IMG/VR virus record: IMGVR_UViG_3300035070_002626
Span: 186,001-250,000 of that record
Reading direction: 5' to 3' (one strand)
Length of the DNA stretch: 64,000 bases
Shown here: one piece after another, positions 1,140 to 60,940 of the stretch
How the letters are laid out: each line of letters begins with the position of its first letter
Position numbering within the stretch: the first letter of the stretch is position 1
The notes under the pieces: model-generated
Told to the model about the DNA's origin: nothing
Database searches by the model: none
What the model saw: only the letters and a program-made list of their open reading frames with translations
Position numbers and translations under genes: made by a program

Positions 1140-2800
1140 CTGCTGTAGTTCTCCTGCAAAATATGCCAGGCGGTGCCTTCCTGCATTTCTTTAGGTGTAA
1201 ATTGATTGTATGCTAAATTGCAACAAAGATTTCTAACTTCGGGTATAGACGGCATGTAAGGAGTTGCAATTTTCTTTAAGTCTGTGTTAGCCAATGGCTG
1301 CGCTGCATTTGGTCCCATTGTGAACACAGGCTTTCCAAATATCAATGCTTCTACCGCAGCAATACTGTTGTAAGTTACCAAACAGTGCACATCTTGAGAT
1401 AGTGCCATTTCCATTGTGTCCACATTAACACGAGCATGTCGGCTTTGTTTTTCCCTGACTACAATAGGCCTGTCAGTGTGCTGTTTAATTTCGTTGATTG
1501 TTGTTTCTACCCATTCTGTTAAATCTACACCCCAATAAGACAGTGCTTTTTGACTAGGAGGACACAGCAAGATATTTCTCCCTGGAAGATGTCTGTTAAT
1601 TGTAACACCTGTTTTGAGAAATCTATCATCTTGGCACTGTTGGTATAATGGTGCACTATATTGCAATGCATTTTTAGTAATTCGGTGATATTTTTTATGC
1701 TTGCCGTTGCCAAAATAGCCAGTGTCAATGTAATAAAAATCTCGCTTTTCTTCTAAGCATCTATGTATTACTTTCTTTTTAGCAATACCTCTTACTACAA
1801 CCGGCACTGACAAATCAGTTAATTCTACGTGCTTGCTTGCTCCAAACACTCCGTTGGACCCTAATAAAAAACTCTCTACTATTACATCCAACTTTGATTC
1901 TCCTTTTGGTTGAGTAACGCCAGCATCAACAATGCCCATACAGCCCGGGGTATTATGAGATTGTATTATACGTTCAATGATGTTGTCCATACTGTCTTCG
2001 TTAAATATACCAAAAGGGTCACGGCGTAGTTTTAATAAATCTTTAATATCATTTCTAATGTCTTCGGGCAGTGTTAAATCACTTGCACTAATTGTGGGAT
2101 TGTTTAACGTTTCCAAATATTCGTCATGATAGGCATTCCACACATTAGCATACGCACAATCTTCATAATTTTCAAACCATGGGCCTCCTTCAGTGTAGTG
2201 CAAAAGTTTAGGGCTACCGTCACGAGGTTCTACATACCAGTCAGTTAACCAGTTCCATTCAGGGTTAACTGCGCCAATTTCTCTGTCTTTAAGCCAGCTA
2301 AATCTATGCAAGTATGCACCTGTTATATCTGGGGCGTTAACAACATCAACAGTTATTTTTTTATTGGCCTTGTGTGCGCAATTCCACACAACCATGCTGC
2401 TCCAATTTTTACGTGGATAAACTGTTTGTTGTTGCCCGTCCATCTTTACACCTTCTTTAGGAGTGTAATCATGTTGAACGCAAGTTACTGCTTTTTTAGG
2501 ATCAACTTCCTCAATGAGTTTGGCAATATCGTCCACTAGTATCATATCACTATCCATAAAGATAGCAGTACCTTTATAGTTGTTAAGTACTGGTACTAAA
2601 AAACGAGTGAACGTAAATTCTGTACTTGCAAGTTTATCAACTTCGCGACTATAAAATCCACGCATGCGCAAATCGTCTTGTTTTAGAAAGTGTATGTCCA
2701 CCGGAATAGTTGCATGTTTTAATATGCTGTGGCGGCACACGTCAGCAGCAATAGGTTCGCGACTGTCCCATCCAATGTAAATTGTAAGAATATCTTCCAT
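1136..2800 (-). CDS. Bifunctional glycosyltransferase: N-terminal GT-A (GT8/CDI-like) plus C-terminal capsule-synthesis-like domain
   Basis: IYIGWDSRE...STEFTFTRFLVP...FMDSDM (DxD)...KNWSSMVVWN...HYTEGGPWF; second half REK...HCLVTYNSIAAVEALIFGKPVF. Confidence 0.7.
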   Translation of the reverse strand: MEDILTIYIGWDSREPIAADVCRHSILKHATIPVDIHFLKQDDLRMRGFYSREVDKLASTEFTFTRFLVPVLNNYKGTAIFMDSDMILVDDIAKLIEEVDPKKAVTCVQHDYTPKEGVKMDGQQQTVYPRKNWSSMVVWNCAHKANKKITVDVVNAPDITGAYLHRFSWLKDREIGAVNPEWNWLTDWYVEPRDGSPKLLHYTEGGPWFENYEDCAYANVWNAYHDEYLETLNNPTISASDLTLPEDIRNDIKDLLKLRRDPFGIFNEDSMDNIIERIIQSHNTPGCMGIVDAGVTQPKGESKLDVIVESFLLGSNGVFGASKHVELTDLSVPVVVRGIAKKKVIHRCLEEKRDFYYIDTGYFGNGKHKKYHRITKNALQYSAPLYQQCQDDRFLKTGVTINRHLPGRNILLCPPSQKALSYWGVDLTEWVETTINEIKQHTDRPIVVREKQSRHARVNVDTMEMALSQDVHCLVTYNSIAAVEALIFGKPVFTMGPNAAQPLANTDLKKIATPYMPSIPEVRNLCCNLAYNQFTPKEMQEGTAWHILQENYSR

Positions 2801-3555
2801 TAGTCTCTTCTTTCAATGTCTTCTTCACTGAGTTCGGTACCCATCCAAACTTCAATTACTTTAGCAGTAACATTGCCGACATTAGTTGCTTTGTGCCAAG
2901 TGTGTGCAGGAATATCAATACTTTGTCCCGATGTATATAATATACTTGACTTGTCGCCATTGGCAAACTCTAAATCCATACGGATATCGCCTTCAACTAC
3001 ATGCCAATGTTCACTACGTATAAAATGTCTTTGGTCACTCAGCGGAGTTTCGGTCCCAAATGCAAGTTCCTTTACTGCCCAACCAGGGCCATTATGCAAC
3101 ACTGTGTAACTTCCCCATGCACGGTGCGTTGTAGGTTGACTCCACTCTTTGAGTATCCAACTACTGCTATTCTTTTTATCTTCGCCGCCAACACCAAATG
3201 CAAACTCTACATCCGAATAAATCATTTCTGGAATATTATCTTTAGTTCTGTCACCGCCGTTGGCAAATACAATTTTTGTTTTGTTGCTTGCTGTAGACAG
3301 CAATTGAAAAATTGCACTGCATGCTGTGTCGTCGTTGTCATTGAACCCAATAACTTCATCTACACATGCTAATTCTTTAATAATAGAACAGCGCTCTTCA
3401 AAGGACATAAAAGGGCGACCTTTTTTACGTGCGAGCCATTCATCGCTATTAACTCCTACAACAAGCTTGTCGCCAAGTTCTCTTGCTGCCTTAAAATATG
3501 CTATGTGCCCGCTGTGAAGTGGATCAAACCCCCCTGTAACTAATACTACAATCAT
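2800..3555 (-). CDS. Cytidylyltransferase (TagD/RfaE-II family) fused to cupin (mannose-6-phosphate isomerase type II C-terminal-like)
   Basis: TGGFDPLHSGH (HxGH), GVNSD, KKGRPF, ANGGDR, SSS; C-terminal RAWGSY...QRHFIRSEHWHVVEG...WHKATN cupin motifs. Confidence 0.8.
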   Translation of the reverse strand: MIVVLVTGGFDPLHSGHIAYFKAARELGDKLVVGVNSDEWLARKKGRPFMSFEERCSIIKELACVDEVIGFNDNDDTACSAIFQLLSTASNKTKIVFANGGDRTKDNIPEMIYSDVEFAFGVGGEDKKNSSSWILKEWSQPTTHRAWGSYTVLHNGPGWAVKELAFGTETPLSDQRHFIRSEHWHVVEGDIRMDLEFANGDKSSILYTSGQSIDIPAHTWHKATNVGNVTAKVIEVWMGTELSEEDIERRD

Positions 3556-3609
3556 AGTTGATATCCTTGATTTCTTGTTTTAAATGTGTCTACAGCGTGT
3601 GTTATTAAA

Positions 3610-4428
3610 TTATGCAATCCCATATGTTTCACCTTCGTGTCGCATGCCATTGAACACTGTGGTCTTAAATTTATTATTATCACTGTTTATTGTAGTAAAA
3701 AAATCTAAGTCTAGATCTAATTTTTCTATTAAATTAATTATTGCTCTTGTGTCCTTGGGCAAACACATCCCGCCGTATCCGCGTAGTTCATTGCTTACAT
3801 CAAGATACATATCACCCGCTCTGCCTGTTAGAATATAAGCATCTTTGACTCGTGTATAATCACTGTCTAACTTCTGACAGATTTCATAAAACACGTTAGC
3901 AAATGTAACTCGTGTAGCAGCATACAAATTTAGATAGTATTTGAGTATCTCAGCTTCATTTGGATTTAATTGTACAGTATGCACCGGATAATGCCCGTGT
4001 GCCTTTACAACAGTTTCGTAAACATAATTGTCTTTGGTTCCTACTGCTAGCATTTTATGTTCATTAATAAAGTCGTGTTCTGCACAACGCTCTCTTATAA
4101 ATTCTGGAACAAAACAAATCTGTCTATTTGTATATGTGTCTAGCATACTTTGTGTAAAGCCCGGAACAGTACTACTTCTAATAGCAATTATACCGTTGTA
4201 ATCTATGCTGTCTAACTCTTGTATTACACTCTTGACTATGTCAGTATTGCAGTCACCATTGGGCTTACTAGGTGTAGGCACACAAATAAATGTACACTCT
4301 GTATCTTTTACAATATTAATTGATGTATCAAATTTAGTGTCGTGCACAAATACATTGTGCCCTAGTTGCTCAAAGCCTACTTTGTTTGCTTTGCCTATTA
4401 CACCTAATCCAATAATTCCTAATTTCAT
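3610..4428 (-). CDS. ugd: UDP-glucose/GDP-mannose 6-dehydrogenase family, short form lacking the C-terminal domain
   Basis: GIIGLGVIG Rossmann motif, FICVPTP, RSSTVPG, PEFIRE, EAEILKY..N, GYGGMCLPKD catalytic Cys; only 272 aa. Confidence 0.85.
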   Translation of the reverse strand: MKLGIIGLGVIGKANKVGFEQLGHNVFVHDTKFDTSINIVKDTECTFICVPTPSKPNGDCNTDIVKSVIQELDSIDYNGIIAIRSSTVPGFTQSMLDTYTNRQICFVPEFIRERCAEHDFINEHKMLAVGTKDNYVYETVVKAHGHYPVHTVQLNPNEAEILKYYLNLYAATRVTFANVFYEICQKLDSDYTRVKDAYILTGRAGDMYLDVSNELRGYGGMCLPKDTRAIINLIEKLDLDLDFFTTINSDNNKFKTTVFNGMRHEGETYGIA

Positions 4429-5297
4429 TTTAAGTTTGCCTCAACTGTATATTTTAATCCAGCGTGTAGATCTGTAGTGGGCACCCATCCTGTTAGTCGT
4501 TGCACCTTTGTAATGTCCGGCATACGTCTGCGCACACTACCTTCTGGTGCAGGAAACTTTTTAATAGGCTGATCAACTCCCATATTATCTAGTATAATTT
4601 GTGCTAGGGTGAGCACATCAACTTCTTCGTTACTACCAATGTTAACTATTTCTCCACGTGCTGCATCTGTAAACATCAATGCTACTAGTGCATCACAAAA
4701 GTCCTTAACGTACAACCAGCTGCGTGTGTTGTCGTATCCGTATAGTTCTACGACACCTGTTTTCACTCTATCAATAAATTCATCAACAAAGTGATTAATT
4801 TGGCGAGGACCATATATGTTGTTAGGTCGTACTATAATCCAATCTAGTCCGCTTGCAATACATGCTTGCTCACCGAGTGCTTTTGAATTAGCATAGCTCC
4901 ATCGAATATTTGTAACGTCGGACACCACAATAGGACACGCTTCGTCTGTTGGTATCTTGTAGTTAAAGTAGTCAGTTGCTCCTGCAATACTTTCTGGTGT
5001 GCCAGTGTATACTATTAGCGGGCGCAACCCATCTTTGTTTCTGTAGTAGTCTAATATGTTAAGGGTAGGAATAATGTTGTCATTGATAACTTCAAACCCT
5101 TTGGTGTAAAAATCTTTGGTACTGTTGTATGCAGCAAGGTGTACAACGATATCTACTTCTGGAAATACTTTAGTTGTCTTAAGATCACCGGACTCTTTGT
5201 CCCATGCTATAATTTCACACTCTGGATGCTGTAGTGTTAATGTTTCTATAAGGTGACTTCCTATAAATCCTGATGCACCTGTAATTAATATTTTCAT
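4425..5297 (-). CDS. NAD-dependent epimerase/dehydratase (extended SDR), UDP-glucuronate decarboxylase (ArnA/UXS)-like
   Basis: ILITGASGFIGSHL, HLAA, GTPES, RWSYANSK (YxxxK), RPNNIYGP, TRSWLYVKD, RRMPDITK. Confidence 0.75.
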   Translation of the reverse strand: MKILITGASGFIGSHLIETLTLQHPECEIIAWDKESGDLKTTKVFPEVDIVVHLAAYNSTKDFYTKGFEVINDNIIPTLNILDYYRNKDGLRPLIVYTGTPESIAGATDYFNYKIPTDEACPIVVSDVTNIRWSYANSKALGEQACIASGLDWIIVRPNNIYGPRQINHFVDEFIDRVKTGVVELYGYDNTRSWLYVKDFCDALVALMFTDAARGEIVNIGSNEEVDVLTLAQIILDNMGVDQPIKKFPAPEGSVRRRMPDITKVQRLTGWVPTTDLHAGLKYTVEANLK

Positions 5298-5298
5298 T

Positions 5299-6483
5299 TT
5301 ATTGTCCGTTCATTGATACGTTGTCAAATGCTTTAAGCATTTTGTCTATGCCTTCTTTACAGTCAACAGCATGATTGCCTACCCAGAAACCATTTTTATG
5401 AATGTTTTCAGCAGCATCGTAGTTGCCAGTGGCAGTGTGTGGTAGCATTGATATTACAGGTTGAGCAAGGAAGTTTCCACTGGCAAGTGGTCTCGATTCG
5501 ACGCCTAACAATTCAAACTGTTCAACTAACAGATCACGTTTACCTTCCATGCTTCCATTGAGTACACAACCAAAACTAAACCAACTACTGTTGCCTACTT
5601 CTTTTTGTAAAGTTAAGTAACCTTTATCAGCAAACACACTCATAAAGTAATCTTTGTTTTCAATTCTCTTTTTTAAGATGTCTTCCCATTTTTTAATTTG
5701 AATACTTCCTATTGCGCCGCTCATTTCTAAAGGACGTACACTGTATCCAGGGGTTACAAATGTAAAACTGTCTTTGAAAAAGTTACCTGTCTTTTTAAAG
5801 ATACTACTATTGTCTGGCAATTCTCTACACCAACCGTGTGCTCTTAAACTTCTAAGATAATCTGCATCTTCTTGATTTTGTACGCATATCATTCCGCCTT
5901 CCATTGTTTGTAAATGGTGTGAAAAGAAAAAGCTATGACTGCCCATCATTCCGTGTGTACCGCAATATTTGTCGTTGTATGTTGCGCCCATACTTTCACA
6001 GTTGTCTTCTATTAGAACTAAATCATGCTTTTTGCAAATTAAAGTTATTGCATCATAGTCGCATGAATTGCCGCAAAGGTTAACAGGCATAATTGCAACA
6101 GTGCCTCCGTCTATTGCTTGTTCTATTTTGGTTACATCAATATTAAATGTGTTAGGATCAACGTCTACAAAATTTAAAATAAAATCATTTTGTGTTACAG
6201 GAAAATATGTTGTGCTCCATCCCACTGCGGGAACAATAACATTTGCATTAGGTTTTTTATTTAAGTTGTATTTCCATTTTAACAATGATAACATCAATAA
6301 GTTTGCTGTAGAACCGCTGTTTACCATAACAGCATCAGTTGCTCCAAACTTAGTCGCAAATTCTTTTTCAAACGCAAATACCTTGGGACCCATTGTAAAA
6401 CGTCCCGAGTCCATTACTTCTTGTATTGCAATTAGTTCGTCGGTGCCCCATGTGGACGAAGCCAGTGGATACGTTGCCTGCAT
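5299..6483 (-). CDS. colD: DegT/DnrJ-family PLP enzyme, ColD-like GDP-4-keto-6-deoxymannose 3-dehydratase
   Basis: MVNSGSTAN, IEDNCES, SFFFSHHLQTMEGG: His at the position of the Schiff-base Lys, as in ColD; RAHGW, GYSVRPLEM. Confidence 0.7.
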   Translation of the reverse strand: MQATYPLASSTWGTDELIAIQEVMDSGRFTMGPKVFAFEKEFATKFGATDAVMVNSGSTANLLMLSLLKWKYNLNKKPNANVIVPAVGWSTTYFPVTQNDFILNFVDVDPNTFNIDVTKIEQAIDGGTVAIMPVNLCGNSCDYDAITLICKKHDLVLIEDNCESMGATYNDKYCGTHGMMGSHSFFFSHHLQTMEGGMICVQNQEDADYLRSLRAHGWCRELPDNSSIFKKTGNFFKDSFTFVTPGYSVRPLEMSGAIGSIQIKKWEDILKKRIENKDYFMSVFADKGYLTLQKEVGNSSWFSFGCVLNGSMEGKRDLLVEQFELLGVESRPLASGNFLAQPVISMLPHTATGNYDAAENIHKNGFWVGNHAVDCKEGIDKMLKAFDNVSMNGQ

Positions 6484-15114: not shown

Positions 15115-17349
15115 TTATCCTCGAGCTAGTGTTAATAATCTATCTAGCTCTGATTCGATCATTGGGTCACGCTCTGCTTTTAGTGCAGGTTTTCCTGTGT
15201 CAATGTCTGTTACTTCTGTCATATCTTCATCGTCGAGATCTTGTTGATTTGCTTTAGTAAGAGGCTCTTCCTGCGTCGGATCTTCATTTATGGATTCATT
15301 TGCACTAATAAACTTTTCGCCTTGTTTCTCAATCAACTTTTTAAGTGCAACTGCTCCTAGCACGAGTGCAACTGCTGCGCCAATTTCAAATTTGTTGTCG
15401 ATGAGCATTTGTGCATATTCTTCACCAATTGCACTTTTAACCCAATCCCATCCTTGATCCATATAATATGCCCCAGTTGCGCCTGCTGCAATTTTACCAG
15501 CATGTTTTTTTAGTAGCCATTTTAGTACTGGCCATGCACCTCTTGCTGCTACAAATTTAAGAACCCATACTGCTGCTGCTACAAGTGGAGCCATTTCTGT
15601 TAGTTGAGCTTCACTCATAAACGGACGCAATTCTCTTGCGCGGCTTGGGTGCTTTAACATTCTTAAGCCTTTAGATTCACGTTGTCTTATAACTTCCGGA
15701 GTTACGCCCATTGCACTTGCAACCTGTTGCAGTGTGTATTCTTTTTTAAAAGGCCCTATACCAAATCTTGCTTGTATAACTTTTTTAATTTTTACATCAT
15801 CAATTGCATCTAGTTGTGCTGCTAAAACTTTTTTTAATTTTGCACCGTCGACTCCGCTAAAATCAAAATCATCAATGGTGCCGCCAGGCATATCTACTTG
15901 TGTTGCTTTTTTGGTAATATCTTTAGCATCTACTGTATCGTCTGTTGGGATACGTACACCTTTGTATTGAGGACTGTTACCTGCATATGGCATTGCTTCT
16001 CCTAGTGGCTTAAAGCCTCTAGTACTGCCAGTTGGTTCTCCGTTTGGTGCAATTTCTCGTGTGCCACCGAGGTTGCTAAGTGGTCTAGCCTGTGGGCGCA
16101 TGCTACTTGGTCGTGCCATCGGACGCAGGCTAGTCATTGGTGCATTTTCACCAAGCTCGATGTTGAATTCTTTGAGTCTGGCTAGTACCAGTGGTCTACA
16201 ATCGGCATCGGGATTATCCAAACCCATTTCGTAAATGTCATCAAATAGTTCATCGTCGCCAATTAGTCCGTACAGTTGCTCAGTTGCAAATTCTCCAGCT
16301 GGGCCACAATGCAATGGTTCTTTCATAAGTTCAGCTAGTTCTGCCATTTGTTCTGGTGTGCCAGGCAGTGCCCATGTACCTTCGGTAATACTGTCTGCCC
16401 ACTGTTCAAATACGTCAGCTTCTTTCATGTTAGTTTCCTTTATTTTTGCTATTATTGGCAAAGCTTCTTCAATTCGACTATCAAGTGTGTTTGTTGAAAA
16501 CACTTCTCTTACCTTGTCAATGGTTTCATCAAGATCAGTAATTTCCATTGGATCCCATGATGCAAAGATATCTTTATAGCCCTTACGACTAATCATTTTC
16601 TTTGCTTTGCGTTTAAGGTCTTTATAGTGCCTAACTGCATCTTCAGCAATGCTTACTGCATCAACATTTTGACCAAACGATTTACTTTTAGTAGCTCTGA
16701 TAAATTTACTTAATGTTGCTATTTCATTAACTGTGTCACTGATGTGTTGACCAATCTGATCGTATGGATTACCACCTTCAGTTACATGCCTTGCCATTGC
16801 TTTACCGCCGCTTATACTACGGAATGGCATCTTAAATCTTTCGCCTTGACTGTTTTCAACAAACAAACTTTCAATGTTTCTAAAACGTGCTTCGCCTTCG
16901 CCTAGTTTTCTTGAATGTTTGATAATAAGCTTTGCTGGGCCTTGTTTATTATAACTAGTTTTGTTTGTACCGTTCCAGCCTTCAGCTAACTGGGCCATAC
17001 TTTTCATTGAATACTTTAATCTATTCATGTTGTTAAGGCTAAATGTATACAAGTTACGCTTTGCTATATTTCTAATAACTGCAAGAAAATCATACCAATC
17101 ACCGCGGTCATCACGCTCCATTGTGCGTCCGATACTGTCGCCGTAGTATACTTCAATTTTGTCTTCGCCGTCTATTAGAATGACTACTGTCCCGTAATCT
17201 TTGTTTTCAGTTTTAAAATTAAACGAAATCAAGTCAGCATCAGCTGCATTCACAGTAGGCTTGCCCATAGCGTTAAGTGCTTTAGGGTCAAAGTCTCGTG
17301 TTACTATTGTGTCAAAAATTTGTTGTGCTGCGTTGTTATCTTGTGCCAT
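15115..17349 (-). CDS. Large modular probable virion/internal-head protein containing a sigma-70 region 4 domain
   Basis: 744 aa immediately after the terminase; RFGIG...YTLQQVA...VTPEVIRQRESKGLRMLKHPSRARELRPFM aligns by eye to the RpoD C-terminus; modules separated by hydrophobic-x-E motifs. Confidence 0.75.
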   Translation of the reverse strand: MAQDNNAAQQIFDTIVTRDFDPKALNAMGKPTVNAADADLISFNFKTENKDYGTVVILIDGEDKIEVYYGDSIGRTMERDDRGDWYDFLAVIRNIAKRNLYTFSLNNMNRLKYSMKSMAQLAEGWNGTNKTSYNKQGPAKLIIKHSRKLGEGEARFRNIESLFVENSQGERFKMPFRSISGGKAMARHVTEGGNPYDQIGQHISDTVNEIATLSKFIRATKSKSFGQNVDAVSIAEDAVRHYKDLKRKAKKMISRKGYKDIFASWDPMEITDLDETIDKVREVFSTNTLDSRIEEALPIIAKIKETNMKEADVFEQWADSITEGTWALPGTPEQMAELAELMKEPLHCGPAGEFATEQLYGLIGDDELFDDIYEMGLDNPDADCRPLVLARLKEFNIELGENAPMTSLRPMARPSSMRPQARPLSNLGGTREIAPNGEPTGSTRGFKPLGEAMPYAGNSPQYKGVRIPTDDTVDAKDITKKATQVDMPGGTIDDFDFSGVDGAKLKKVLAAQLDAIDDVKIKKVIQARFGIGPFKKEYTLQQVASAMGVTPEVIRQRESKGLRMLKHPSRARELRPFMSEAQLTEMAPLVAAAVWVLKFVAARGAWPVLKWLLKKHAGKIAAGATGAYYMDQGWDWVKSAIGEEYAQMLIDNKFEIGAAVALVLGAVALKKLIEKQGEKFISANESINEDPTQEEPLTKANQQDLDDEDMTEVTDIDTGKPALKAERDPMIESELDRLLTLARG

Positions 17350-17360: not shown

Positions 17361-18932
17361 TTAAAACATTGCCACAAACGGCAAAGGTTCAATTTGATCC
17401 TCTCCAAAATCAGTCATGTGTGTATCCAGTTCCTTGTGATACCCTGTTAAAATTTGCAACATACGAATAGCTAATATGGTAGACATAACCAAATCATCTG
17501 TTTCTCCTGGTTTAGCTGCATAGCTAGTGCCATGGGCTACGAAATTTTTAAATTCGCTTATCAAGCTTCTGCTACGAACTGTCATTTTGTCTGTTTCTAC
17601 AAGTGTTTTTAACTTTGCACACGCCGAAACTTTACTCTTATTGGTAGTGTTAAATCCTTTGCGATATCGTCTGCTACTGCCACTAACAACACTGTTGTCG
17701 CTTAGGAAGTAACCAGGTATGTTTTGTTCTCCGTATTGCTCAATAGTAATCAATGCAGCTTCACCTAATGTGTTGTTTTCAACCGAGTAGTATATACTCT
17801 GTGCATCTTGAACCTCATCGTTAATATGTTTAATAATATCAACTAGTATACGAATTTGGTCTGGAATAGGAGTTTTATTGTGTCGCCATTCTGCTATCTG
17901 TTCTGTTGTGTTAGCCTCAAACACTTGGATAGCACTTGGGTCGCCGCCTGTGCCCAGACTTGGATCTAATGCTACTACATAGATTCTATTTTTCTGTGGC
18001 TTTTTATACCAGCGAACTTGTCCAGTTTTGTACAACGGCTCTATACCTTCAAGGTCGATCAGTTTGGTTGGAGCAATAAGTGTTTCGTCGTTAATAATGA
18101 ATTCACAATCCATTTCTCGCCGAAAACGCTCAACTCCTAATATCGCACGTTGCTCATCTGCCCATTCTTCGTCTCTGTCAGGATGCTCGGCCCAATATGC
18201 TCGATATGCTTTAAATCCATTAATACCCAAGTCTTTGGTATTTCCAAACTCGTCTTCGGTTTTGTTTGCACCTTTCCATATGTATGCAAACTGATCCTCA
18301 TCACTATTCGGTGTACTAGTAATAATAGCTCCACCACCTGTACTCAATGTAGGCGATATACTAGTCCAAAATTCTTTAGCAATAGTAGGTCGAACAAATG
18401 CAAACTCGTCACAATATAAAAGTGTAATACTCATACCACGTCCGGTATTTTCAGTTGTTGTTTGTGCTACAATACGACTTCCGTTGTCAAATTCAATACT
18501 GCCTTTATTATAACTTACTACACCGGCTCGTATGTGATTTGGACATGCTTCATATGCATACCTTACACGTTGCATAATCTCCTGAGCACCTGCATACTTG
18601 TGCGCTGCAACAAGAATTGTACTGTCGGGCTTGAACATACCAAACCAAAGAAGATAACCAGCAGCACTTGTGCTCTTACCGGTTTGTCGAGGCATCATTG
18701 ATATTGAAAATCTGTTTTCATGATAGGTTTGAATCAAGCGTTCTTGAAATTCCCATGGATCGTATTGCATTTTTCCTTGCACAGGGTGTTGTATGAAGAA
18801 AAAGTTCTTCATAAAGTATTCAGCACCCTTTACTGGATCAGCACACAACACAAATTCTTGAATTTGCTGCTCGGTGTATTCTTCTTTTTTATGGGGACTT
18901 TTAATTAGTACCCCGTCAAGTGATTTACTCAT
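17361..18932 (-). CDS. gp17: Terminase large subunit
   Basis: MPRQTGKST Walker A, LLYCDEFAF Walker B, ITSTPN, nuclease ALDPSLG, DDLVMS; 523 aa. Confidence 0.95.
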   Translation of the reverse strand: MSKSLDGVLIKSPHKKEEYTEQQIQEFVLCADPVKGAEYFMKNFFFIQHPVQGKMQYDPWEFQERLIQTYHENRFSISMMPRQTGKSTSAAGYLLWFGMFKPDSTILVAAHKYAGAQEIMQRVRYAYEACPNHIRAGVVSYNKGSIEFDNGSRIVAQTTTENTGRGMSITLLYCDEFAFVRPTIAKEFWTSISPTLSTGGGAIITSTPNSDEDQFAYIWKGANKTEDEFGNTKDLGINGFKAYRAYWAEHPDRDEEWADEQRAILGVERFRREMDCEFIINDETLIAPTKLIDLEGIEPLYKTGQVRWYKKPQKNRIYVVALDPSLGTGGDPSAIQVFEANTTEQIAEWRHNKTPIPDQIRILVDIIKHINDEVQDAQSIYYSVENNTLGEAALITIEQYGEQNIPGYFLSDNSVVSGSSRRYRKGFNTTNKSKVSACAKLKTLVETDKMTVRSRSLISEFKNFVAHGTSYAAKPGETDDLVMSTILAIRMLQILTGYHKELDTHMTDFGEDQIEPLPFVAMF

Positions 18933-18937
18933 GTTAA

Positions 18938-18974
18938 TACTTATCTACTGTGTGTGGCCTTATGCAGTTAAATA
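18938..18974. promoter_or_regulatory. Back-to-back late-type promoters (TAAGTA on minus for terminase; TAAATA on plus for HNH)
   Basis: Minus: GATAAGTA ttaac ATG(18932). Plus: TTAAATA at 18968-74, 8 nt before ATG 18983. Confidence 0.5.
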
Positions 18975-18982
18975 CTGTTAGC

Positions 18983-19528
18983 ATGGAAAGTACATTAATA
19001 CTAGCACCCGACTACCAACCAGTAAGTTTCTTGCCACTATCAACAATTAGTTGGCAAACAGCAATTAAGTTGTTTTTCCTCGACAGGGTAACTGTACTGG
19101 AATGGCACGATGACTGGGTGGTACACAGTACAAAGTTGGACATACGAGTACCAGCAGTTGTTGTGTCCAATCGAGGATTTAAACGTTCTAGAAAAAAACC
19201 ACGTTTTACCAGGCAAGGATTGTATCTTAGAGATGTATACACTTGCCAATATTGCGAAGAAGTTGTTGGAAAAAAAGATTTAACGTTGGATCATGTTATA
19301 CCAATTAGCCGAGGTGGCAAAACAACATGGGAAAACAGTGTAACTGCATGTGGATCGTGCAACTCGAGAAAGGGCAGTGCTCTGTGGAAACCAATCAAGC
19401 AACCAGTTGCACCAGATTATTGGGATATTGCAAATCGTATTAGAAATATCCCAATGAAAATACGTCACGAAAGTTGGCAAAAATACATTGGTGCAACAAA
19501 TGTAACTGTTACTCGTCTATCTGCTTAG
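18983..19528 (+). CDS. HNH endonuclease (McrA-like, Zn-binding)
   Basis: TCQYC...LTLDHVIPISRGGKTTWENSVTACGSCNSRKG. Start reassigned to MESTLIL downstream of the promoter. Confidence 0.88.
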   Translation: MESTLILAPDYQPVSFLPLSTISWQTAIKLFFLDRVTVLEWHDDWVVHSTKLDIRVPAVVVSNRGFKRSRKKPRFTRQGLYLRDVYTCQYCEEVVGKKDLTLDHVIPISRGGKTTWENSVTACGSCNSRKGSALWKPIKQPVAPDYWDIANRIRNIPMKIRHESWQKYIGATNVTVTRLSA

Positions 19529-21144: not shown

Positions 21145-21522
21145 TTACCTCGGATATCCTTTAAATGCTATAACTGGGCTTTCGGTGTGAACACCGTCAG
21201 GTTCTCGACTGCCTGTGTGCGACCCGTCTTCTTTACTAACCATCCCAAGTGCAGCAAACGCTTTCTTTGCCATATCTCTTTCTACATCAGAGAACGGGCT
21301 AATAAGACCATCGCCGCCAATCCAACTTTCTGGATCTGGCATGTTTTCATTGTTTCCTTCAGCGTCCATTCCGGCCATGGCGATAGTAGCACGATACATA
21401 TCGTAGTAGCCTTTGCTTCTCACATGGCCAGGACTTGCTGCTTGATGCACATGGGGCGCTTTGCCTTTCCTGTGCTTAAAACGCAAGCCTCTTTCTTCCT
21501 GTAGGAATTCAATAGCTCTCAT
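21145..21522 (-). CDS. Hypothetical protein with capsid-targeting-like N-terminus
   Basis: Begins MRAIEFLQE/E. Confidence 0.55.
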   Translation of the reverse strand: MRAIEFLQEERGLRFKHRKGKAPHVHQAASPGHVRSKGYYDMYRATIAMAGMDAEGNNENMPDPESWIGGDGLISPFSDVERDMAKKAFAALGMVSKEDGSHTGSREPDGVHTESPVIAFKGYPR

Positions 21523-33504: not shown

Positions 33505-33882
33505 CTATTTTTTTGGTTTAACTGTTTTTTTAGTTCCAGTTGTGCCTTTAAGGCTACTCTTAGGCGGCTTGTATGCTTTTTGAACTTTGCCGCCGCTAGT
33601 AACACTAGACTTGCGCATCTTGTTGAGCATGCTTAATAACTTGCTTGCCGGATTTACACGTTTAGTCTTCTTGGCTTTGCGAGCTGCTTGAGCACTCTTG
33701 GTCTTGCGAGTCTTCTTCATTTGAGCTCGCTTGGCTTGATCAATCGGAGCATCGCAATCTTTTGCATTGCTAACAACACGACCGTTTCGTGGGCCGCTAG
33801 TACAACGCCATTTGGTTTTCAGTTTGTTACCTGTACGACTAAAAACCATTTCGTGTTCGGTGATAAATTCTTCTGCTCTCAT
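33505..33882 (-). CDS. Highly basic Lys/Arg-rich protein with capsid-targeting-like N-terminus
   Basis: Start reassigned to MRAEEFITE/H (TAATG overlap with the gp13 stop); K-rich tail. Confidence 0.65.
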   Translation of the reverse strand: MRAEEFITEHEMVFSRTGNKLKTKWRCTSGPRNGRVVSNAKDCDAPIDQAKRAQMKKTRKTKSAQAARKAKKTKRVNPASKLLSMLNKMRKSSVTSGGKVQKAYKPPKSSLKGTTGTKKTVKPKK

Positions 33883-42835: not shown

Positions 42836-45800
42836 TTACATCATTAGTGCTAGTACTTCGATAACGCCTTCTCCGCCTTCGTGAGCTTCGATTGCTTTAC
42901 CAATTACTGTACCCATTGCTGCATCGTTGTTAGCCATTGCACGACCATTACCAGCTGATACCATCAAGTCACCTGCTGCTACTGGACCTGTTACCTTACA
43001 AGGAACACGACCTGCTAGTGCAAGAGCAACACCTTCTTGTGTGCTGTTCATCAAGTGAGCTGGATCAGTTGAGATAATGCCTGCTACTGCACGACAGTTT
43101 TCACTGTCACATGCTGCAACTTTGCCTTCTCCGCCAAACATTACAACAGTACCTGCTTCAATGTCTGCATCAGCTGCATACATCTCTGCCAAGTCAGCGT
43201 ATTGTGCTGAAGTTGCTGTTGCTGTGATTGTACCGGCACTAAAGTTACCACTACCATCGCGGAATACAATTGTATTAGCTGTGCTTGCGCTTGTAGCGTT
43301 TGATGTAACAGTAAATGTTCCACCTTCACTACTTACACTACCACTAATACCACTACCTGATGTAGCACCTGTACCAACATAGTTACCAGTTGTATCAGTA
43401 CCTAGTGCAACCGAGTTAGCTGCAATAGTTGCTGTTAGTGTAGCATTACCAAGGTTAGTAAGTGTTGCACTACCAGTCAAGTCACCAGCAAGTGTAATTG
43501 TTGGATCAGCAGTATTTGTAGTTGCAATAGTAATACCTGAACTACCATCAAAGTTAGCAGTACCAGTTACAGCGCCACTGAGTGCAATTGCTCTAGGTGT
43601 AGTTAATTTTGCAGCACTACCAGTTGTGTTTTGGTTAAGTGTACCAACTGTTGCTGTTAGTGTAGCATCACCTAGGTTAGTAAGTGTTGCACTACCAGAT
43701 AGATCACCAGCAAGTGTAATTGTTGGATCACTTGTTGCAGTTGTTGCAATAGTAATACCTGAACTACCATCAAAGTTAGCAGTACCAGTTACAGCACCAC
43801 TAAGTGCAATTGCTCTAGCAGTTGAAAGTGTGTCAGCACTACCAGTTACATCACCTACTACGTCACCAGTCATACCAGCCGCAGTAAAGGTTGCACTTAA
43901 TGTGCCGCCTCTTGTAACTGTAACATCGCCATTTAAGGCAGTAGCAACACTAGTTGTGCCATTTTGGATCTGTGTAGCGTCAATGCCGGTTAGCTGACTA
44001 CCGTCACCAATAAAGCTGGTTGCCGCAATGTTACCACTAGCAGTTAAGTTACCAGTTACATTAGCACCGTCTGTTGTAGCAATCATAGATGCTACACCAC
44101 CAGCAGTAATGTTAACGTTACCGTTTGCACCTGCAAAATCAACAAGCGAACTACCACTTTGGATACTATCACCAGCAATTTCAACTGCGTCATCAATTAC
44201 ACCTGGTGTTGTACCATCTGGGCCAAAGAAGCCGATAGCATTACCGCCTGTGTTTTTAATAACAACGTTACCAAGTGTGATTGTACTACCTGCTAGGAAC
44301 AATTCGTTCCAGCGTTTAGTATCACTACCAAGGTTTTGTGCTACGTTTGCTGCTGGCAACAAGTTACCAGTAACTTCAACAGTTGGTGCACCACTTAGTG
44401 CTTCAACTATTGCAGTTGCATCACCGTTTGATAGAGAAACAATACTCGTTGTGGTTGTGATTTCACGAACTTCAATTGTATCGCCTGTTGCCGGAGCTTC
44501 AGTAAATGTCAATGCTGTTCCGCTAACACCGTATGCTGTAGTTGGTAGCTGTACCACACCGTTAATACTAACAATAACACTAGCAGTTGTTTGAGTTGAC
44601 TGTAGCGTAAATGCTACTGTACTATCATCACCTGAGAATGTTTCACTAGCAATAACTGTGAATTCAACACCAGCTGTTGCCCAGCTGTCATTATCGTAGA
44701 ATTCAAACTGATCCAATGAAGTATTGAAACGAATCATACCAGTTGCTGGGGTACCAGGTCGTTGTGCTGTAGAACCAACCGGAATCATCATACTTTCAGT
44801 GCCTGTTACTTTAAGCGTAGCACCTGCGGTTTGAGTAGCGTTTTCACCGATAGCAACTGTTGAAGTACCTGCATCTGCTAGTACATATGCATTACCTGCT
44901 GCGTTCTCAATGAGAACATCAACATCTTGACTGTCAGTGTTTAGTGTAATAGTTTCACCAGCACTATCAATACTATCAGTATTAACGGTAATGTTACCGA
45001 AAGTACCTGCATCTGCAAAGACACCAGTAGTATTGACATTACCTGAGTCAACATTGCCACTGAATGTAGCAGCAACACCACCTGTGATTGTACCAGCTGT
45101 TGAACTCAATGTTCCATCAGTTAGTGTACCACCTGTTACAGTACCACTTGCTGTTAGTGTAGTTGCATCAACCAATGTTGTGTTAACATTACCTGAGTCA
45201 ACATTGCCACTGAATGTAGCAGCAACACCACCTGTTAGTGTACCGGCAGTAATACTTGCAGTACCGTCTGTTAGTGTGCCACCTGTTACAGTGCCACTTG
45301 CAGTTACAGTAGTTGCATCAACCAATGTTGTGTTAACATTACCACTATCAACGTTACCACTGAATGTAGCAGCAACACCACCTGTGATTGTACCACCAGT
45401 TGAACTTAGTGTACCATCAGTTAGTGTACCACCAGTTACAGTACCACTTGCAGTCAATGTAGTTGCATCAACCAATGTTGTGTTAACATTACCTGAATCA
45501 ACATTGCCACTAAATGTAGCAGCAACACCACCTGTAATACTACCAGCATTTAGACTTGCAGTACCATCAGTTAGTGTAGCACCTTCGACAGTACCTGACG
45601 CTGTTACAGAGACAGTTGTTACATCTGCTTGTGATACAATATTACCACCAGTTACATTACCGACTGCTGTTAGTGCCTGTGCTTCAAGTGCACCACCTGT
45701 AATCAAGTTACCAGCAGTTACATTACCACTAAACGTAGCAGCAACACCACCTGTAATACTACCAGCAGTAATACTTGCAGTACCGTCTGTTAGTGTGCCA

Positions 45801-48800
45801 CCTGTTACGGTGCCACTTGCAGTCAATGTAGTTGCATCAACCAATGTTGTGTTAACATTACCTGAATCAACATTGCCGCTGAATGTAGCAGCAACACCAC
45901 CTGTGATTGTACCAGCTGTTGAACTTAGTGTACCATCAGTTAGTGTACCGCCTGTTACAGTGCCACTTGCATCTACAGTAGTTGCATTGACTCTAGTTGT
46001 GTTAACATTGCCCGAGTCGACATTACCACTGAATGTAGCAGTTACGCCACCTGTGATACTACCTGCGTTAAGACTTGCTGTGCCATCAGTTAATGTGCCA
46101 GCTTGTACTTGACCACTGAATGTAGCAGCTACGCCACCAGTTACAGTACCACCAGTTGAACTTAGTGTTCCGTCAGTTAGTGTACCACCTGTTACAGTGC
46201 CACTTGCATCTACAGTAGTTGCAGCAACTCTAGTTGTATTAACGTTACCACTGTCAACATTACCACTAAATGTAGCAGCAACACCACCTGTAATACTACC
46301 AGCATTTAGACTTGCAGTACCATCAGTTAGTGTAGCACCTTCAACTGTGCCTGTTGCAGTTAGACTTGTACCAGTAGCAGCACCAATATCTGGTGTTACA
46401 AACTGTGCACCTGCTTTAACAACAACTGCATCAGCAGTGATTGTAGTTGTAGTTTCGTCAACATTTACAGATAGCTCATTACCTGCTTTAGATAGACCGT
46501 CGCCTGCTACAATCGAACCAGCACCTGAGAACTGACTCCAGGTAATAGCAGTTGTACCCATAGTAACCGGAGCGTTTGTTGTACAAACCCAACCACTATC
46601 AAGGTATACTGTGCCTTCTTCAACAAAAGTAAACGCACCTGGAATTTCACTAGTAGGTGAACCATCCATGTCTTCTGCACGAGTTAGAACGTAGGCAGTG
46701 CCTGCGTCACCTAGTGTAGTAACAACATAGATACCATTGTTTGCGGCAGTAGCTTCGTCTTTAACGAGTAGTCTGTCGCCTTGTGCCATTACAACATCAT
46801 CTTGATCAGCTAGTGCACCGTTTGCATTACCTGTTAGTGTAGCGCCTACACCAGCTGTGCCGTTGTCGTATGTGTTAGCTGGCAGGGCAGAAGCAGTTGC
46901 GGCTCTAGTTGAACCTTTAACGTCAAGACCTTCTGCAACACTGTCAACATAGCCTTTATTGGCTGCGTCACTGTCTTGTACTGGATCTGCAAGAGAAACA
47001 ATTTTTGCACTACTTGCATCAATAACGCCTGTGCCACTTGGAAGAAGAACAATGTCTTCATTTGTGCCAGTTGCAGTAAGAGTTACCGAAGTACCTTTAA
47101 CGTCAGTTGTGTTAACCACACTAGCATTTACGTTGCCAGTTGCAGTTACGTCTAGTCCTTGTACTGTACCAGTAAATGTAGCATCGGTTCCGCCTGTGAT
47201 TGCACCAGAGTTGATACTCAATGTGCCATCAGTTAGTGTACCAGCTTGTACTTGACCACTGAATGTAGCAGCTACGCCGCCTGTTAGTGTACCAGCATTA
47301 AGACTTGCAGTACCATCAGTTAGTGTACCACCAGTTACAGTACCACTTGCTGTTAGTGTAGTTGCATCAACTAGTGTTGTGTTAACATTACCACTGTCAA
47401 CATTACCACTGAATGTAGCAGTTACGCCACCTGTGATACTACCACCAGTTAGTGTAGCAGTGCCATCAGTTAGTGTGTCGCCAGTTATAGTACCACTTGC
47501 ATCCACAGTAGTTGCATTGACTCTAGTTGTGTTAACATTACCCGAATCAACATTACCACTAAATGTAGCAGCAACTCCACCTGTTAGTGTGCCACTAGTA
47601 ATACTTGCGGTGCCATCAGTTAGTGTACCGCCTTCAATTGTGCCGCTTGCGGTTACAGATACTGTTGTTACGTCTGCTTGTGATACAATATTACCACCAG
47701 TTACGTTACCAACGGCTGTTAGTGCTTGTGCTTCAAGTGCGCCACCTGTAATCAAGTTACCGGCAGTTACGTTACCACTGAATGTAGCAGCTACGCCGCC
47801 TGTTAGTGTACCAGCAGTAATACTTGCTGTGCCATCAGTTAGTGTACTACCTGTTACAGTGCCACTTGCATCTACGGTAGTTGCATTGACTCTAGTTGTG
47901 TTAACATTACCACTGTCAACATTACCACTGAATGTAGCAGTTACACCGCCTGTGATACTGCCACTATTAAGACTTGCTGTGCCATCAGTTAGTGTACCAC
48001 CTGTTACAGTGCCACTTGCAGTCAATGTAGTTGCATCAACTAGTGTTGTGTTAACATTACCACTGTCAACATTACCACTGAATGTAGCAGCAACACCACC
48101 TGTTAGTGTGCCACTAGTAATACTTGCAGTGCCATCAGTTAGTGTACCACCTGTTACAGTGCCACTTGCAGTTACGCTAACAGTTGTTACATCTGCTTGT
48201 GATACAATATTGCCACCAGTTACGTTACCAACGGCTGTTAGTGCTTGTGCTTCAAGTGCGCCACCTGTAATCAAATTACCAGCAGTTACGTTACCACTGA
48301 ATGTGGCACTCACGCCACCTGTAATTGCGCCGGCAGTAATACTTGCTGTGCCATCAGTTAGTGTGCCACCTGTTACAGTGCCACTTGCATCTACGGTAGT
48401 TGCATTTAATGTAGTTGCATCAACTAGTGTTGTGTTAACATTACCTGAATCAACATTACCACTGAATGTAGCAGTTACACCACCTGTGATTGCACCCGAG
48501 TTGATACTCATTGTGCCATCTGTTAGTGTCGGTGCTGTAACAGAAGTACCAGCTTCGATTGTAGCATCAACGTTTAGTGCTGTTGTTACGTTACCACTTG
48601 GTGCCATGTTGACCAATGTAAGGTCTGCAACTTGTGCATCAGCATAACTTGATAGCGCAACCACGTTGCCACTTGCATCTGCTGATGTGAACCCTGCTGC
48701 AAATTCACTTGCACTTTCGTCCCAAATCCATGCGATGTTAGTTGAATCCCCACGTTCGCCAACAAAGCCAATGTCAAAAACTGGCGAGCCAGTTTGATCT

Positions 48801-56823: not shown

Positions 56824-58035
56824 TTATGAGAACGAAAGGTTCTGTACAGCAATTTCACCAACATAGTCACCGGCGTTGCCGAAGGACGATGCTGTGTTTG
56901 TTAGCTCAATATAGCCATAACGTGTCATAAAGGACACTACTGGCTCAAAGCTGGACGGATCAAGAACAACGCCTGAACTCATTAGCGGTACGTATGGGCA
57001 ATAGAACGCTGGTGCGTCTGTTTCACTTGCGCCTTTGTAGCCAACTAGTACTGGAGTTGTGTCGCCTGCGTATGAGTCACAGAATACACGCATTGTGCCA
57101 TTCAATGTACCAACGAATTTAGTATTTGTTGGTGCTTCAAATGTGCCTTCTGTTGTGCGAGCAAATGCACTTGTTGTTGCACTCTGTAGCACTGTAAGTG
57201 CAGCAGGGGAAACAACAGCATAGTTGCCTGCGCCACGACGTGTACGCTGAGCGATCAAGTTAGCTGTGCGGTTGATTAGAACTGCAAGAGCTGCATGCTC
57301 GTCACCAACAAATGTTGCTGTACCTGATACTGTGGCTTGGTTGTATGTAAACTCAGTTGCTGCTAGCGAACGTAGAGAAAGTAGAATCTCTTGGTCGATT
57401 TCAGCAGTAATCTCTTGAGCAAGTGCTGCCATGATTTCAGCTTCAACGTCAATGCCGTGCATGGCTTGTGCGTCTTGTGCTGCTTCAAAAGTCCAGCGAG
57501 CTTGTAGCTTACGTGTTTTTGCTTCAACAGCTTGCTTGAGGATTTGTACGGAAATCTGACGACCGCCGGAACCTTCAAGTACTGCTGTGTTTGCACCTTG
57601 GTATGTGTTCTGTGCATTTTGTACAACGCCTGCTGTCACTGTGGACGCAGAGGAGTAAGCTTGTGCAATTTTAAATGGTGATAGAGCTTCGTCACCAGCG
57701 GCTGTACTTGTTGCGGCTGCTGAGTTATCTGTCATTGCGTTTGCATAACGAACACGTAGTGTGTGGATTTGGCCAACTGGACCAGTCATTGGCTGAACGC
57801 CGACTAGTTCGTTAGCAATAACAGTTGGCATAACACGTCTGATAACTGGTAGGATAACACGGTTAAGTGTTGCTACGTTACCGGAAGAAGTTGAACCTGC
57901 TGTTGCGTTCTCTGCCAAGTGCTTGCGAGTGTTTTCTAGGATAACACCCATTGTTGAACGGCGTGAACCTTGAAGGCCTTCTAGGAGGGCTTCCTTGGTC
58001 TCACTCCATCTGTTTTCTAGTAGTTCTTGTGACAT
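56824..58035 (-). CDS. gp23: Major capsid protein
   Basis: RRVMP..IA.ELVGVQPMTGP.GQI..LR, VEAKTRKLQARWTFE.AQD, EIDQEI, FYCPYVPL, FMTRYG. Confidence 0.96.
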   Translation of the reverse strand: MSQELLENRWSETKEALLEGLQGSRRSTMGVILENTRKHLAENATAGSTSSGNVATLNRVILPVIRRVMPTVIANELVGVQPMTGPVGQIHTLRVRYANAMTDNSAAATSTAAGDEALSPFKIAQAYSSASTVTAGVVQNAQNTYQGANTAVLEGSGGRQISVQILKQAVEAKTRKLQARWTFEAAQDAQAMHGIDVEAEIMAALAQEITAEIDQEILLSLRSLAATEFTYNQATVSGTATFVGDEHAALAVLINRTANLIAQRTRRGAGNYAVVSPAALTVLQSATTSAFARTTEGTFEAPTNTKFVGTLNGTMRVFCDSYAGDTTPVLVGYKGASETDAPAFYCPYVPLMSSGVVLDPSSFEPVVSFMTRYGYIELTNTASSFGNAGDYVGEIAVQNLSFS

Positions 58036-59157: not shown

Positions 59158-59784
59158 CTAAATCTTTAGGTCCCTAATCAAACGAGATACTTCGTCTGTT
59201 AGGTACTTCTGTATTTTGTCGTTTGACCCTGACTCCCTAGCCATTTCAAGAACCGAATGACCATGTTTCATGTTCAAAAGTCCTTCGTAAATAGCTTTAG
59301 GGTAAGCATTTGGAGCACTGGGCTGTGCGACTACATCGACAGTAACAATTTCAAAGTCACTGACGTGTCCGTTGTGTGGATCTACATTACCTGATCCACG
59401 ACTAGATACTCCCAATCGTACACCTGACTGAAGCATAGTTTTAACTAGCTCACCCATTGGTGTTGGAAGTATTTTTAGTTTTCCGTATCCATTTGGACCG
59501 TCCATCCACATACTAGTAATCATGTGACATACACGGTCTAAATTAATCTTAAGGTCATCCGGGTGATCAACTTCACCAAGGACGCTATTGCCTTCTTTGA
59601 TCTGTTCATTAAGAGTTTTAACTGCGTTAGAAATCTCACTCACAGGGTATATTCGCTCATTAGCGTTCTTAACACCACCTTGTATGCAGATGCCTTCCAT
59701 AAAGAGTTCCTTACCGTCTTTCCCTTCAACAAGTTGAATTTGTGCGGTTTCGAAGGTAAGGTTTTCTCTAAGATAAAGAGCCAT
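59158..59784 (-). CDS. gp21: Prohead core protease
   Basis: NANERIYP, LGEVDHP (catalytic His), TPMG, GVSSRGSG (catalytic Ser), DVVAQPSAPNA. Confidence 0.93.
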   Translation of the reverse strand: MALYLRENLTFETAQIQLVEGKDGKELFMEGICIQGGVKNANERIYPVSEISNAVKTLNEQIKEGNSVLGEVDHPDDLKINLDRVCHMITSMWMDGPNGYGKLKILPTPMGELVKTMLQSGVRLGVSSRGSGNVDPHNGHVSDFEIVTVDVVAQPSAPNAYPKAIYEGLLNMKHGHSVLEMARESGSNDKIQKYLTDEVSRLIRDLKI

Positions 59785-60724: not shown

Positions 60725-60940
60725 TCACATTTGTGGCGGCGCTGGTGCATATTGTGCTTGCACCTTTTTCAGCTCTTCCTTTTTTTCATAATTTCGCATG
60801 TCATACATTTTACGCAATTTTGAAATTTGTTTAAGAGTTAGTTTAGTTTTGCGCAGTTCGCCGAGTTGCGGTGTAGAATTGTCATCCTCTACATCTTGGT
60901 ATCCTTCTGGTGCTGCTTCAAAAAATTCAAATAGTTTCAT
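60725..60940 (-). CDS. Small head-module protein
   Basis: MKLFEFFE/A...RKTKLTLKQISKLRKM; TAAATA 5 nt before ATG (60946-51). Confidence 0.7.
   Translation of the reverse strand: MKLFEFFEAAPEGYQDVEDDNSTPQLGELRKTKLTLKQISKLRKMYDMRNYEKKEELKKVQAQYAPAPPQM

Follow-up and report, generated by a model that had tools for sequence, protein, structure and literature searches.

The window analysed here, a stretch of 64,000 nucleotides (positions 186,001 to 250,000 of IMG/VR virus record IMGVR_UViG_3300035070_002626), comes from an uncultured jumbo phage with a T4-type core. One of its genes, on the minus strand, encodes a 744-residue protein that carries region 4 of a primary sigma-70 factor (sigma-4) as an insertion in the variable middle of an otherwise conserved phage protein, and the inserted cassette belongs to a wider family of phage modules. 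The same window encodes a prohead protease of the T4 gp21 family. The reading we favour, with a probability of about 0.4, is that the cassette is packaged with its carrier, released by this protease and injected as a sigma-4 mimic directed at the flap of the host RNA polymerase and/or at -35 DNA. An earlier interpretation made from the letters alone, here called the sequence-only reading, had proposed a captured RpoD region 4 embedded in a packaged, protease-processed virion protein; the domain itself has stood up well, while its borders and its origin had to be revised.

Identity of the sigma-4 domain

The domain had been recognised by eye in window 15616-15873 on the minus strand, which corresponds to residues 493-578 of the 744-residue open reading frame (ORF). 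A Pfam scan of the whole protein places Sigma70_r4 (PF04545) at residues 522-567 with E=4.3e-8 and 33 bits, against a gathering score of 24.1, and finds no other domain in the carrier; the 86-residue piece alone scores 37.6 bits (E=1.6e-9). Searching the PDB chains with phmmer returned 58 matches, every one a sigma factor (best E about 1e-10) and all of them primary factors of the RpoD/SigA/HrdB kind except the weakest, a SigB. The alignment reaches the C-terminus of sigma-70 (E. coli residues 532-612 of 613), and the module is 35-41% identical in sequence to primary-sigma region 4. The predicted fold agrees: an AlphaFold model built from module homologues reaches a predicted local distance difference test score (pLDDT) of 87-96 over the five sigma-4 helices, over 75 residues the modelled domain superimposes on solved region 4 of sigma-70 and SigA with a root-mean-square deviation of 1.0-1.4 A (about 1.1 A), and the 50 best Foldseek matches of the predicted module in the PDB are without exception primary-sigma region 4. 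The group-1-type region 4 of the sequence-only reading is thus borne out by Pfam, by PDB sequence matches and by fold, and its finer details hold as well, namely the change from TRER to TPEV in the recognition helix, the intact HPSR..LR.F tail, and the flanking PLGE/A, FMSE/A and QLTE/M.

Neither Pfam nor NCBIfam matches sigma region 2 or region 3 anywhere in the carrier, and the NCBIfam sigma models align to it only through their C-terminal ends. With region 2 absent, as already judged by eye, the cassette does not qualify as a sigma factor. No second sigma-like copy or donor gene was found in the 64-kb window.

The best NCBIfam model for the module (15610-16014, protein level) is MzaA, the MZA anti-phage sigma factor, at 59.9 bits against 51-54 for the RpoD models. 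A specific kinship with this defence sigma is weak and unconfirmed; the preference amounts to a few bits and is probably non-specific, and in an all-against-all search MzaA-length sequences were no closer to the module than RpoD. The match does bear on one alternative, that free sigma-4 acts as a decoy and titrates the binders of region 4, whether host anti-sigma factors and regulators, AsiA-like proteins of rival phages, or partners of a defence-associated sigma. It would fit this account that MzaA scores best and that the closest solved structures of isolated region 4 are binder complexes (1tlh with T4 AsiA, 2p7v, 4g6d). However, the preference for MzaA is small and MzaA is the sole sigma model in PADLOC, the limited number of injected copies weighs against titration, and the literature search found nothing on such a mechanism. 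We consider a decoy very improbable.

The carrier family and the insertion

The carrier has more than 1700 metagenomic homologues, on contigs of up to 320-539 kb. It matches phrog_13484 ('virion structural protein'), and its N-terminal domain shares 24-32% protein identity with 'virion structural proteins' of PA5oct, RaK2, GAP32 and other jumbo phages. The PA5oct homologue, gp278, shares a TerL...UvsX synteny with the carrier gene and is annotated as detected in virions by electrospray ionisation tandem mass spectrometry (ESI-MS/MS). Alignments of the family reveal three parts, namely a conserved N-domain, a middle that is hypervariable, and an acidic tail of 40 residues that is again conserved. 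For the N-terminal domain the PDB holds no fold match with E<0.4, and its BFVD matches are proteins of uncultured phages, one of them named 'Large polyvalent protein-associated domain-containing protein'; Pfam detects no LPD-type polyvalent domain in the carrier. As the gene follows that of TerL, a role as small terminase was also considered, and is unlikely because there are orthologues without sigma-4 and because the PA5oct homologue is present in virions.

In protein alignments the cassette is a clean insertion relative to the relatives P0002-P0006. Compared with the closest of these, the P0002 locus (L012), the window shows 98.8% DNA identity over 19096-15996, no counterpart over 15995-15583, where L012 has 32 bp, 77% identity over the hydrophobic module that follows (15582-15279), and 96% over 15285-13900. 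The identity stops at 15996, one base past the Glu-451 codon and hence past the codons for P-L-G-E. A break at this point and the divergence of the hydrophobic module together mark a recent cassette swap, which introduced sigma-4 and that module at once. In relatives without the cassette, the position of the downstream L-T-E (residues 583-585) is occupied by L-N-E or L-D-E. The sigma-4 core of about 85 residues was correctly seen at residues 493-578, and it is the boundary of the unit that shifts: the real unit comprises residues 452-580 (15610-15996) and includes a conserved lead-in. A MAFFT alignment hinted that this lead-in is a remnant of sigma region 3.2, a candidate that we rejected, as a profile of the segment scored real sigma factors no better than shuffled ones.

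The same allele, with its reading frame intact, is present in two IMG/VR contigs and one ENA contig, and the 299,910-bp IMG/VR contig L003 is 100% identical to the window over 12.4 kb. Among the 120 best orthologue clusters PF04545 occurs only in the window allele, in keeping with the variable carriage that the sequence-only reading had suggested looking for. It is possible that the cassette is a passenger that landed in a recombination-prone linker, with no role in this carrier and perhaps neither packaged nor cleaved. Its presence in a single allele among more than 1700 homologues, the tolerance of the middle region for many unrelated inserts, and a carrier devoid of the leader typical of other module carriers (described below) all agree with such a view. 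On the other hand, the frame is intact and identical in three assemblies, the copy retains the conserved positions of the module family, and the cassette arrived with the hydrophobic module, as in L004 and L013, which looks like a functional two-module unit. We judge the passenger explanation quite unlikely.

Several further observations concern this region. The hydrophobic module, of about 105 residues (AP..AAAVWV.KW...GAWPV.KWLLKKHGGK...IGAAVAL.LGAVALKK), is a mobile cassette in its own right; it directly follows sigma-4 in the window, in L004 (504-2138) and in L013 (10001-11635), while in P0121 it comes some 45 residues further on. At L012 3631-3806 (P0002, P0003 and P0005; no sigma cassette) it is followed by tandem Arg/Asp/Lys-rich repeats (..DRKAELQKNR..), another variable insert of the carrier protein, absent from the window copy. 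Finally, the L-G-E codons form an AGGAG 5 nucleotides upstream of the ATG of M453 (window 15997-16014, minus strand), and an internal start there, if used, would yield free sigma-4 plus the hydrophobic module. We rejected this start: AGGAG is not kept in L004, L005 or L006, relatives with an MPY/IPY motif, nor is the ATG in L004, and we treat AGGAG as a by-product of the L-G-E codons because none of the three relatives compared keeps it.

A family of phage sigma-4 modules

A HMMER search with a 135-residue piece against 1.84 billion representative proteins gave 4428 sigma-like matches. About 35 protein clusters (50% identity) match the whole unit, including some 45 residues before sigma-4, with E-values down to 1e-56. 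The unit is internal in these clusters, whereas the domain is C-terminal in 86 of 121 ordinary sigma-4 matches. In a tree built on the sigma-4 part alone, all 29 of the 29 module members fall into one exclusive split with a support of 0.996. This clade of phage proteins is monophyletic, and the cassette is therefore not a fresh fragment of a host RpoD. The family thus stems from one old capture, later shuffled among phage genes. What survives of the 'captured RpoD' is thus the primary type of the domain; recent capture from the host is rejected, and so is the use of the phylogeny as a hint to the host, since a clade exclusive to the phage family says nothing about it.

Module carriers range in size from 134 to 965 residues. 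The partners of the module include cytidylyltransferase-like (nucleotidyltransferase), GNAT, ParB-like nuclease and Pterin_4a domains, the hydrophobic module, and short basic Cys-containing tails, while P0137 and P0170 consist only of a leader and the module. The cassette stands repeatedly behind a Pterin-4a-carbinolamine dehydratase (DCoH-like) domain (L005 5698-6492, L006 5698-6492, L009 822-1592, P0122 and P0134), a family that serves as a transcription co-factor in eukaryotes. The motif E-N-F-A-D-G-K-K-K occurs three times at domain borders of P0134, and basic Cys-containing C-terminal tails (..HWCANMKSGRKK, ..CNNPKGFSQKAHCAGRKK) recur among leader-bearing proteins (P0134 and neighbours in L005, L006, L013 and L014).

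Conserved residues and likely action

Residues are numbered here as in E. coli sigma-70, from the phmmer alignment. We take sigma-70 positions 584-589 and 593 to contact the -35 element, and the 4.1 helices with the C-terminal tail to be the surface for the flap tip and for activators. Among 31 module members, E585 is retained in 20, R588 in 26, Q589 in 28, K/R593 in 30 and R596 in 30, and on the side of the tail L598 in all 31, H600 in 28, L607 in 25, R608 in 24 and F/Y610 in 26. R562, P601, R603 and D612 are likewise retained across the family. Position 584 is variable and 586 is about half lost (R in 16, V in 10), and A561, P567-F568, Q575 and A577 are specific to the family. The window copy keeps E585, R588, Q589 and K593. 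With the DNA-contact surface and the flap and tail surface both largely retained, these patterns suggest a working sigma-4, free or tethered, acting at the flap of the polymerase and/or at -35-like DNA.

It might instead be that the cassette only binds DNA, as an internal protein whose helix-turn-helix would clamp the genome of the phage inside the capsid or as it enters the cell, by condensation, end protection or masking of -35-like sites, and makes no contact with RNA polymerase. The conservation of E585, R588, Q589 and K593 would be expected from such a protein, many carriers end in the basic Cys-containing tails expected of DNA-associated internal proteins, and sigma-4 alone can bind -35 DNA (isolated region 4 entries are among our PDB matches). 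Yet the tail specific to primary sigma factors, H600...L607-R608-x-F610, which has a role at the flap and with activators, is equally conserved; the conserved, disordered lead-in suggests a protein partner; and position 584 varies, with the arginine at 586 kept in only about half of the members. We regard DNA binding alone as unlikely.

The retained fold and flap-related residues would also suit a split sigma, in which region 4 is supplied in trans to a region-2-only phage sigma of the gp55 type, or serves as a gp33-like flap-bound co-factor for a class of phage promoters. In favour of this account, jumbo phages of group 2 that have a gp23-type capsid depend on the host polymerase together with phage sigma factors and gp33 (PMC7824862). 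Against it, a scan of ORFs in part of the window turned up neither a gp55 nor a gp33 homologue, most of the roughly 300-kb genome lying outside the window; the gp55-type partner suggested by the sequence-only reading is thus wanting there. Moreover, a part delivered by the virion would precede the synthesis of its partner, and near-identical phages manage without the cassette. A split sigma strikes us as rather improbable.

Leader, prohead protease and border motifs

Most module carriers (30 of 40) begin with a leader of the form M-K/R-h-x-E/D-h-x-E-A, a pattern present in 2 of 121 ordinary sigma-4 matches and in none of 120 members of the 744-residue family. It resembles the N-termini of T4 ipII and ipIII, as read from the T4 record, and the leader-bearing genes lie in runs a few kb upstream of a DNA polymerase gene (loci L005, L006, L008, L010, L013 and L014). 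In T4, capsid targeting requires no more of IPIII than its first 10 residues, of which residues 8 and 10 direct processing by gp21, Alt is trimmed at both ends, and 20-200 copies of targeted fusions are packaged per particle (PMC9026906).

The window contains genes for a gp21-family protease and for a gp23-type capsid protein (Table 1). The candidate propeptide end of the latter, H-L-A-E/N (Glu-42), aligns with F-L-T-E/A at Glu-65 of T4 gp23, so that the L-A-E of the propeptide end named in the sequence-only reading stands where T4 gp23 has its L-T-E cut. Motifs of the form [LIMVF]-x-E flank the module more often than expected: 21 of 30 carriers have one in the 12 residues that follow it (17% expected), and 22 of 31 have one in the 25 residues that precede it (32% expected). 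Inside the module they are four-fold depleted across the family, with 12 observed against 46.7 +/- 5.7 in composition-preserving shuffles, whereas no such deficit is seen in ordinary sigma-4 domains (152 against 168.5 expected). The Glu-575 that is invariant in bacteria (L-E-E) is Gln (L-x-Q) in 28 of 31 module members. Across the family, the motif statistics fit cleavage at the borders of the module.

Proposed mechanism

In the reading we favour, recombination has placed a mobile phage cargo cassette within a conserved virion protein of jumbo phages, in its hypervariable middle part. The carrier would be incorporated into the prohead, where the gp21-type protease would cut after hydrophobic-x-Glu at the borders, LGE-451 and MSE-580/LTE-585, releasing a fragment of about 14 kDa with a C-terminus like the natural end of sigma-70. 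Entering the cell alongside the DNA, this fragment would act as a free sigma-4: it would bind the tip of the beta-flap in the host RNA polymerase and/or DNA resembling the -35 element, compete with region 4 of the host sigma-70, and tilt promoter use in favour of the phage as soon as infection begins. The domain, the insertion, the module family and the protease are observed; head packaging, cleavage, injection and target are inferred.

A number of points weigh against this proposal. The 744-residue carrier begins MAQDNNAAQQ... and has no leader of the targeting type, so the claim of a packaged virion protein is supported by the detection of the PA5oct homologue in virions and opposed by this N-terminus; the carrier family may sit in the head, where the protease acts, or in the tail. 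In the window copy two arginines of the -35 contact are replaced (R584 by P and R586 by V). This copy contains 0 internal motifs against 1.1 expected, which is not significant (P=0.26). The motif alone predicts little, because the protein has 27 of them, 18 within the folded N-domain; the family counts come from related sequences and are hence non-independent, and the F-L-D-E end of the module could be plain inheritance from RpoD. Finally, virion copies are limited, so that a competitor working purely by stoichiometry might be diluted too far in large cells, although the 20-200 copies known from T4 might have an effect in a small cell or close to the site of entry.

It is tempting to speculate on a broader scheme of loading and cutting, in which a single leader or a structural carrier takes several exchangeable effector cassettes in tandem into the prohead, to be cut apart by the prohead protease. 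One effector would be a free sigma-4 mimic that captures the flap of the polymerase at the very start of infection. In a variant of this scheme the pair of sigma-4 and hydrophobic module might stay joined at the inner membrane and hold host polymerase at the site of DNA entry; if so, transcription would help to pull in and express the 300-kb genome. We give this scheme, membrane-held variant included, a low probability.

Features and neighbouring genes of the window

The coordinates of the carrier, its parts and the related genes are collected in Table 1. The T4-type core in the window comprises the gp23-type capsid protein and gp21-family protease, portal, sheath, tube, TerL, UvsX, UvsY and SSB. 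A megablast search of 50,697 phage records found no close cultured relative.

Table 1. Features of the carrier gene, the sigma-4 cassette and related genes in the window.
Feature	Residues	Position	Strand	Description or basis
Carrier gene, 744 aa		15115..17349	minus	conserved N-terminal domain, variable middle, conserved C-terminal tail
N-terminal conserved domain	1-400	16150..17349	minus	62-100% identity across family; AlphaFold pLDDT ~70-85
Disordered linker, Pro/Arg/Ser/Gly-rich	401-451	15997..16149	minus	composition; pLDDT <35; ends in candidate cleavage motif L-G-E (449-451)
Inserted sigma-4 cassette, 129 aa	452-580	15610..15996	minus	pre-sigma-4 segment, regions 4.1/4.2 and C-terminal tail; ends in M-S-E
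Pre-sigma-4 segment	452-500	15850..15996	minus	motif R-I/L-P...K-D-I-T-K-K...D-M/F-P-D; conserved; predicted disordered, pLDDT 47-60
Sigma-70 region 4 fold	502-579	15613..15846	minus	two 4.1 helices, helix-turn-helix, tail helix
Candidate cleavage motif L-T-E, second one downstream of cassette	583-585	15595..15603	minus	motif listing
Hydrophobic/amphipathic helical module	586-690	15280..15594	minus	Kyte-Doolittle peaks 1.65 and 1.77
Acidic C-terminal tail	705-744	15118..15237	minus	nearly invariant in family; M-T-E and M-I-E motifs
Large terminase, immediately upstream of carrier gene		17361..18932	minus	phrog_36964 E=1.4e-109; Terminase_6N at orthologous locus
125-aa ORF		21145..21522	minus	targeting-like leader MRAIEFLQE
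125-aa ORF		33505..33882	minus	targeting-like leader MRAEEFITE
Major capsid protein, gp23 type		56824..58035	minus	phrog_138 E=4.5e-103; 38% identity to T4 gp23
Prohead protease, T4 gp21 family		59158..59784	minus	Peptidase_S77 91.7 bits against cut-off 27; phrog_207 E=1.9e-57
71-aa ORF between portal and protease genes		60725..60940	minus	T4 capsid-targeting-like N-terminus MKLFEFFEA

Other genes of the window deserve brief mention. An HNH endonuclease gene (18962-19528, plus strand) adjoins the large terminase gene on the opposite strand. A run at 2800-6483 encodes heptose-phosphate adenylyltransferase-like, UDP-glucose dehydrogenase-like, nucleotide-sugar epimerase and aminotransferase proteins, and these sugar-nucleotide genes may serve glycosylation of DNA or virion. 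A gene with a radical-SAM domain (60949-61971) lies between the portal gene and the prohead-core and protease genes. The tail-fibre region includes a 2060-residue ORF at 42836-49018, whose 563- and 425-residue neighbours match tail-fibre and decoration families.

Comparison with known systems

The cassette shares with region 4 of RpoD/SigA its fold, both regions 4.1 and 4.2, the C-terminal tail of primary sigma factors, and most of the residues of the -35 contact and the tail. It differs in lacking regions 1-3, in its internal position, in belonging to a phage clade of its own, and in being preceded by a conserved 50-residue segment with no detectable homology to region 3.2.

The presumed route resembles that of the T4 internal proteins. 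As with IPI-III and Alt, the genome encodes a gp21-family protease and a gp23-type capsid protein and hydrophobic-x-Glu motifs bracket the cargo, and as with IPI-III most other module carriers bear an ipII/ipIII-like leader and occur in gene runs. Unlike IPI-III and Alt, the cargo here is a sigma domain, carriers are multi-modular as if one leader loaded several cassettes, and the carrier in the window is leaderless.

The site of action would be the same sigma-4/beta-flap interface as that of T4 gp33 and AsiA. Those are small, separately expressed, non-virion proteins that are not recognisable by sequence as sigma-4 homologues, whereas the cassette, although built into other proteins, is clearly recognisable as sigma-4 of the RpoD type. 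PHROG and Pfam scans gave no gp33 match for the carrier, and no direct comparison with gp33 was made.

Polyvalent proteins (Iyer et al. 2017, PMC5512222), which occur in phages and conjugative elements, combine several domains and are presumed to enter the cell along with the DNA. Module carriers have overlapping partner domains (GNAT, ParB-like nuclease, nucleotidyltransferase), and a BFVD neighbour of the carrier bears the polyvalent name; unlike polyvalent proteins they are smaller and leader-bearing, and the 744-residue carrier is without an LPD domain by Pfam. The survey of polyvalent proteins does not mention sigma domains (PMC5512222), and a survey of jumbo phages mentions phage sigma factors and gp33 and no sigma-4 cassette in virion or leader-bearing proteins (PMC7824862). 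In the literature searched we found no description of the sigma-4 cassette family.

By comparison with these systems, the cassette family is presumably a variant on injected host-takeover cargo and on factors of the sigma-4 interface. Phages are known to re-programme host RNA polymerase through small proteins made after infection (AsiA, gp33), through injected enzymes (Alt), or by bringing their own polymerase. If our favoured reading is true, the cassette would represent a fourth route, virion-delivered molecular mimicry by the host sigma's own docking and -35-reading domain, and targeting to T4-type capsids would extend well past the classic internal proteins, to modular cargo that a protease cuts apart. 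In addition, the modules may be useful as a compact natural ligand of the polymerase site that binds sigma-4, and as a test case for the start of transcription in jumbo phages without a polymerase of their own.

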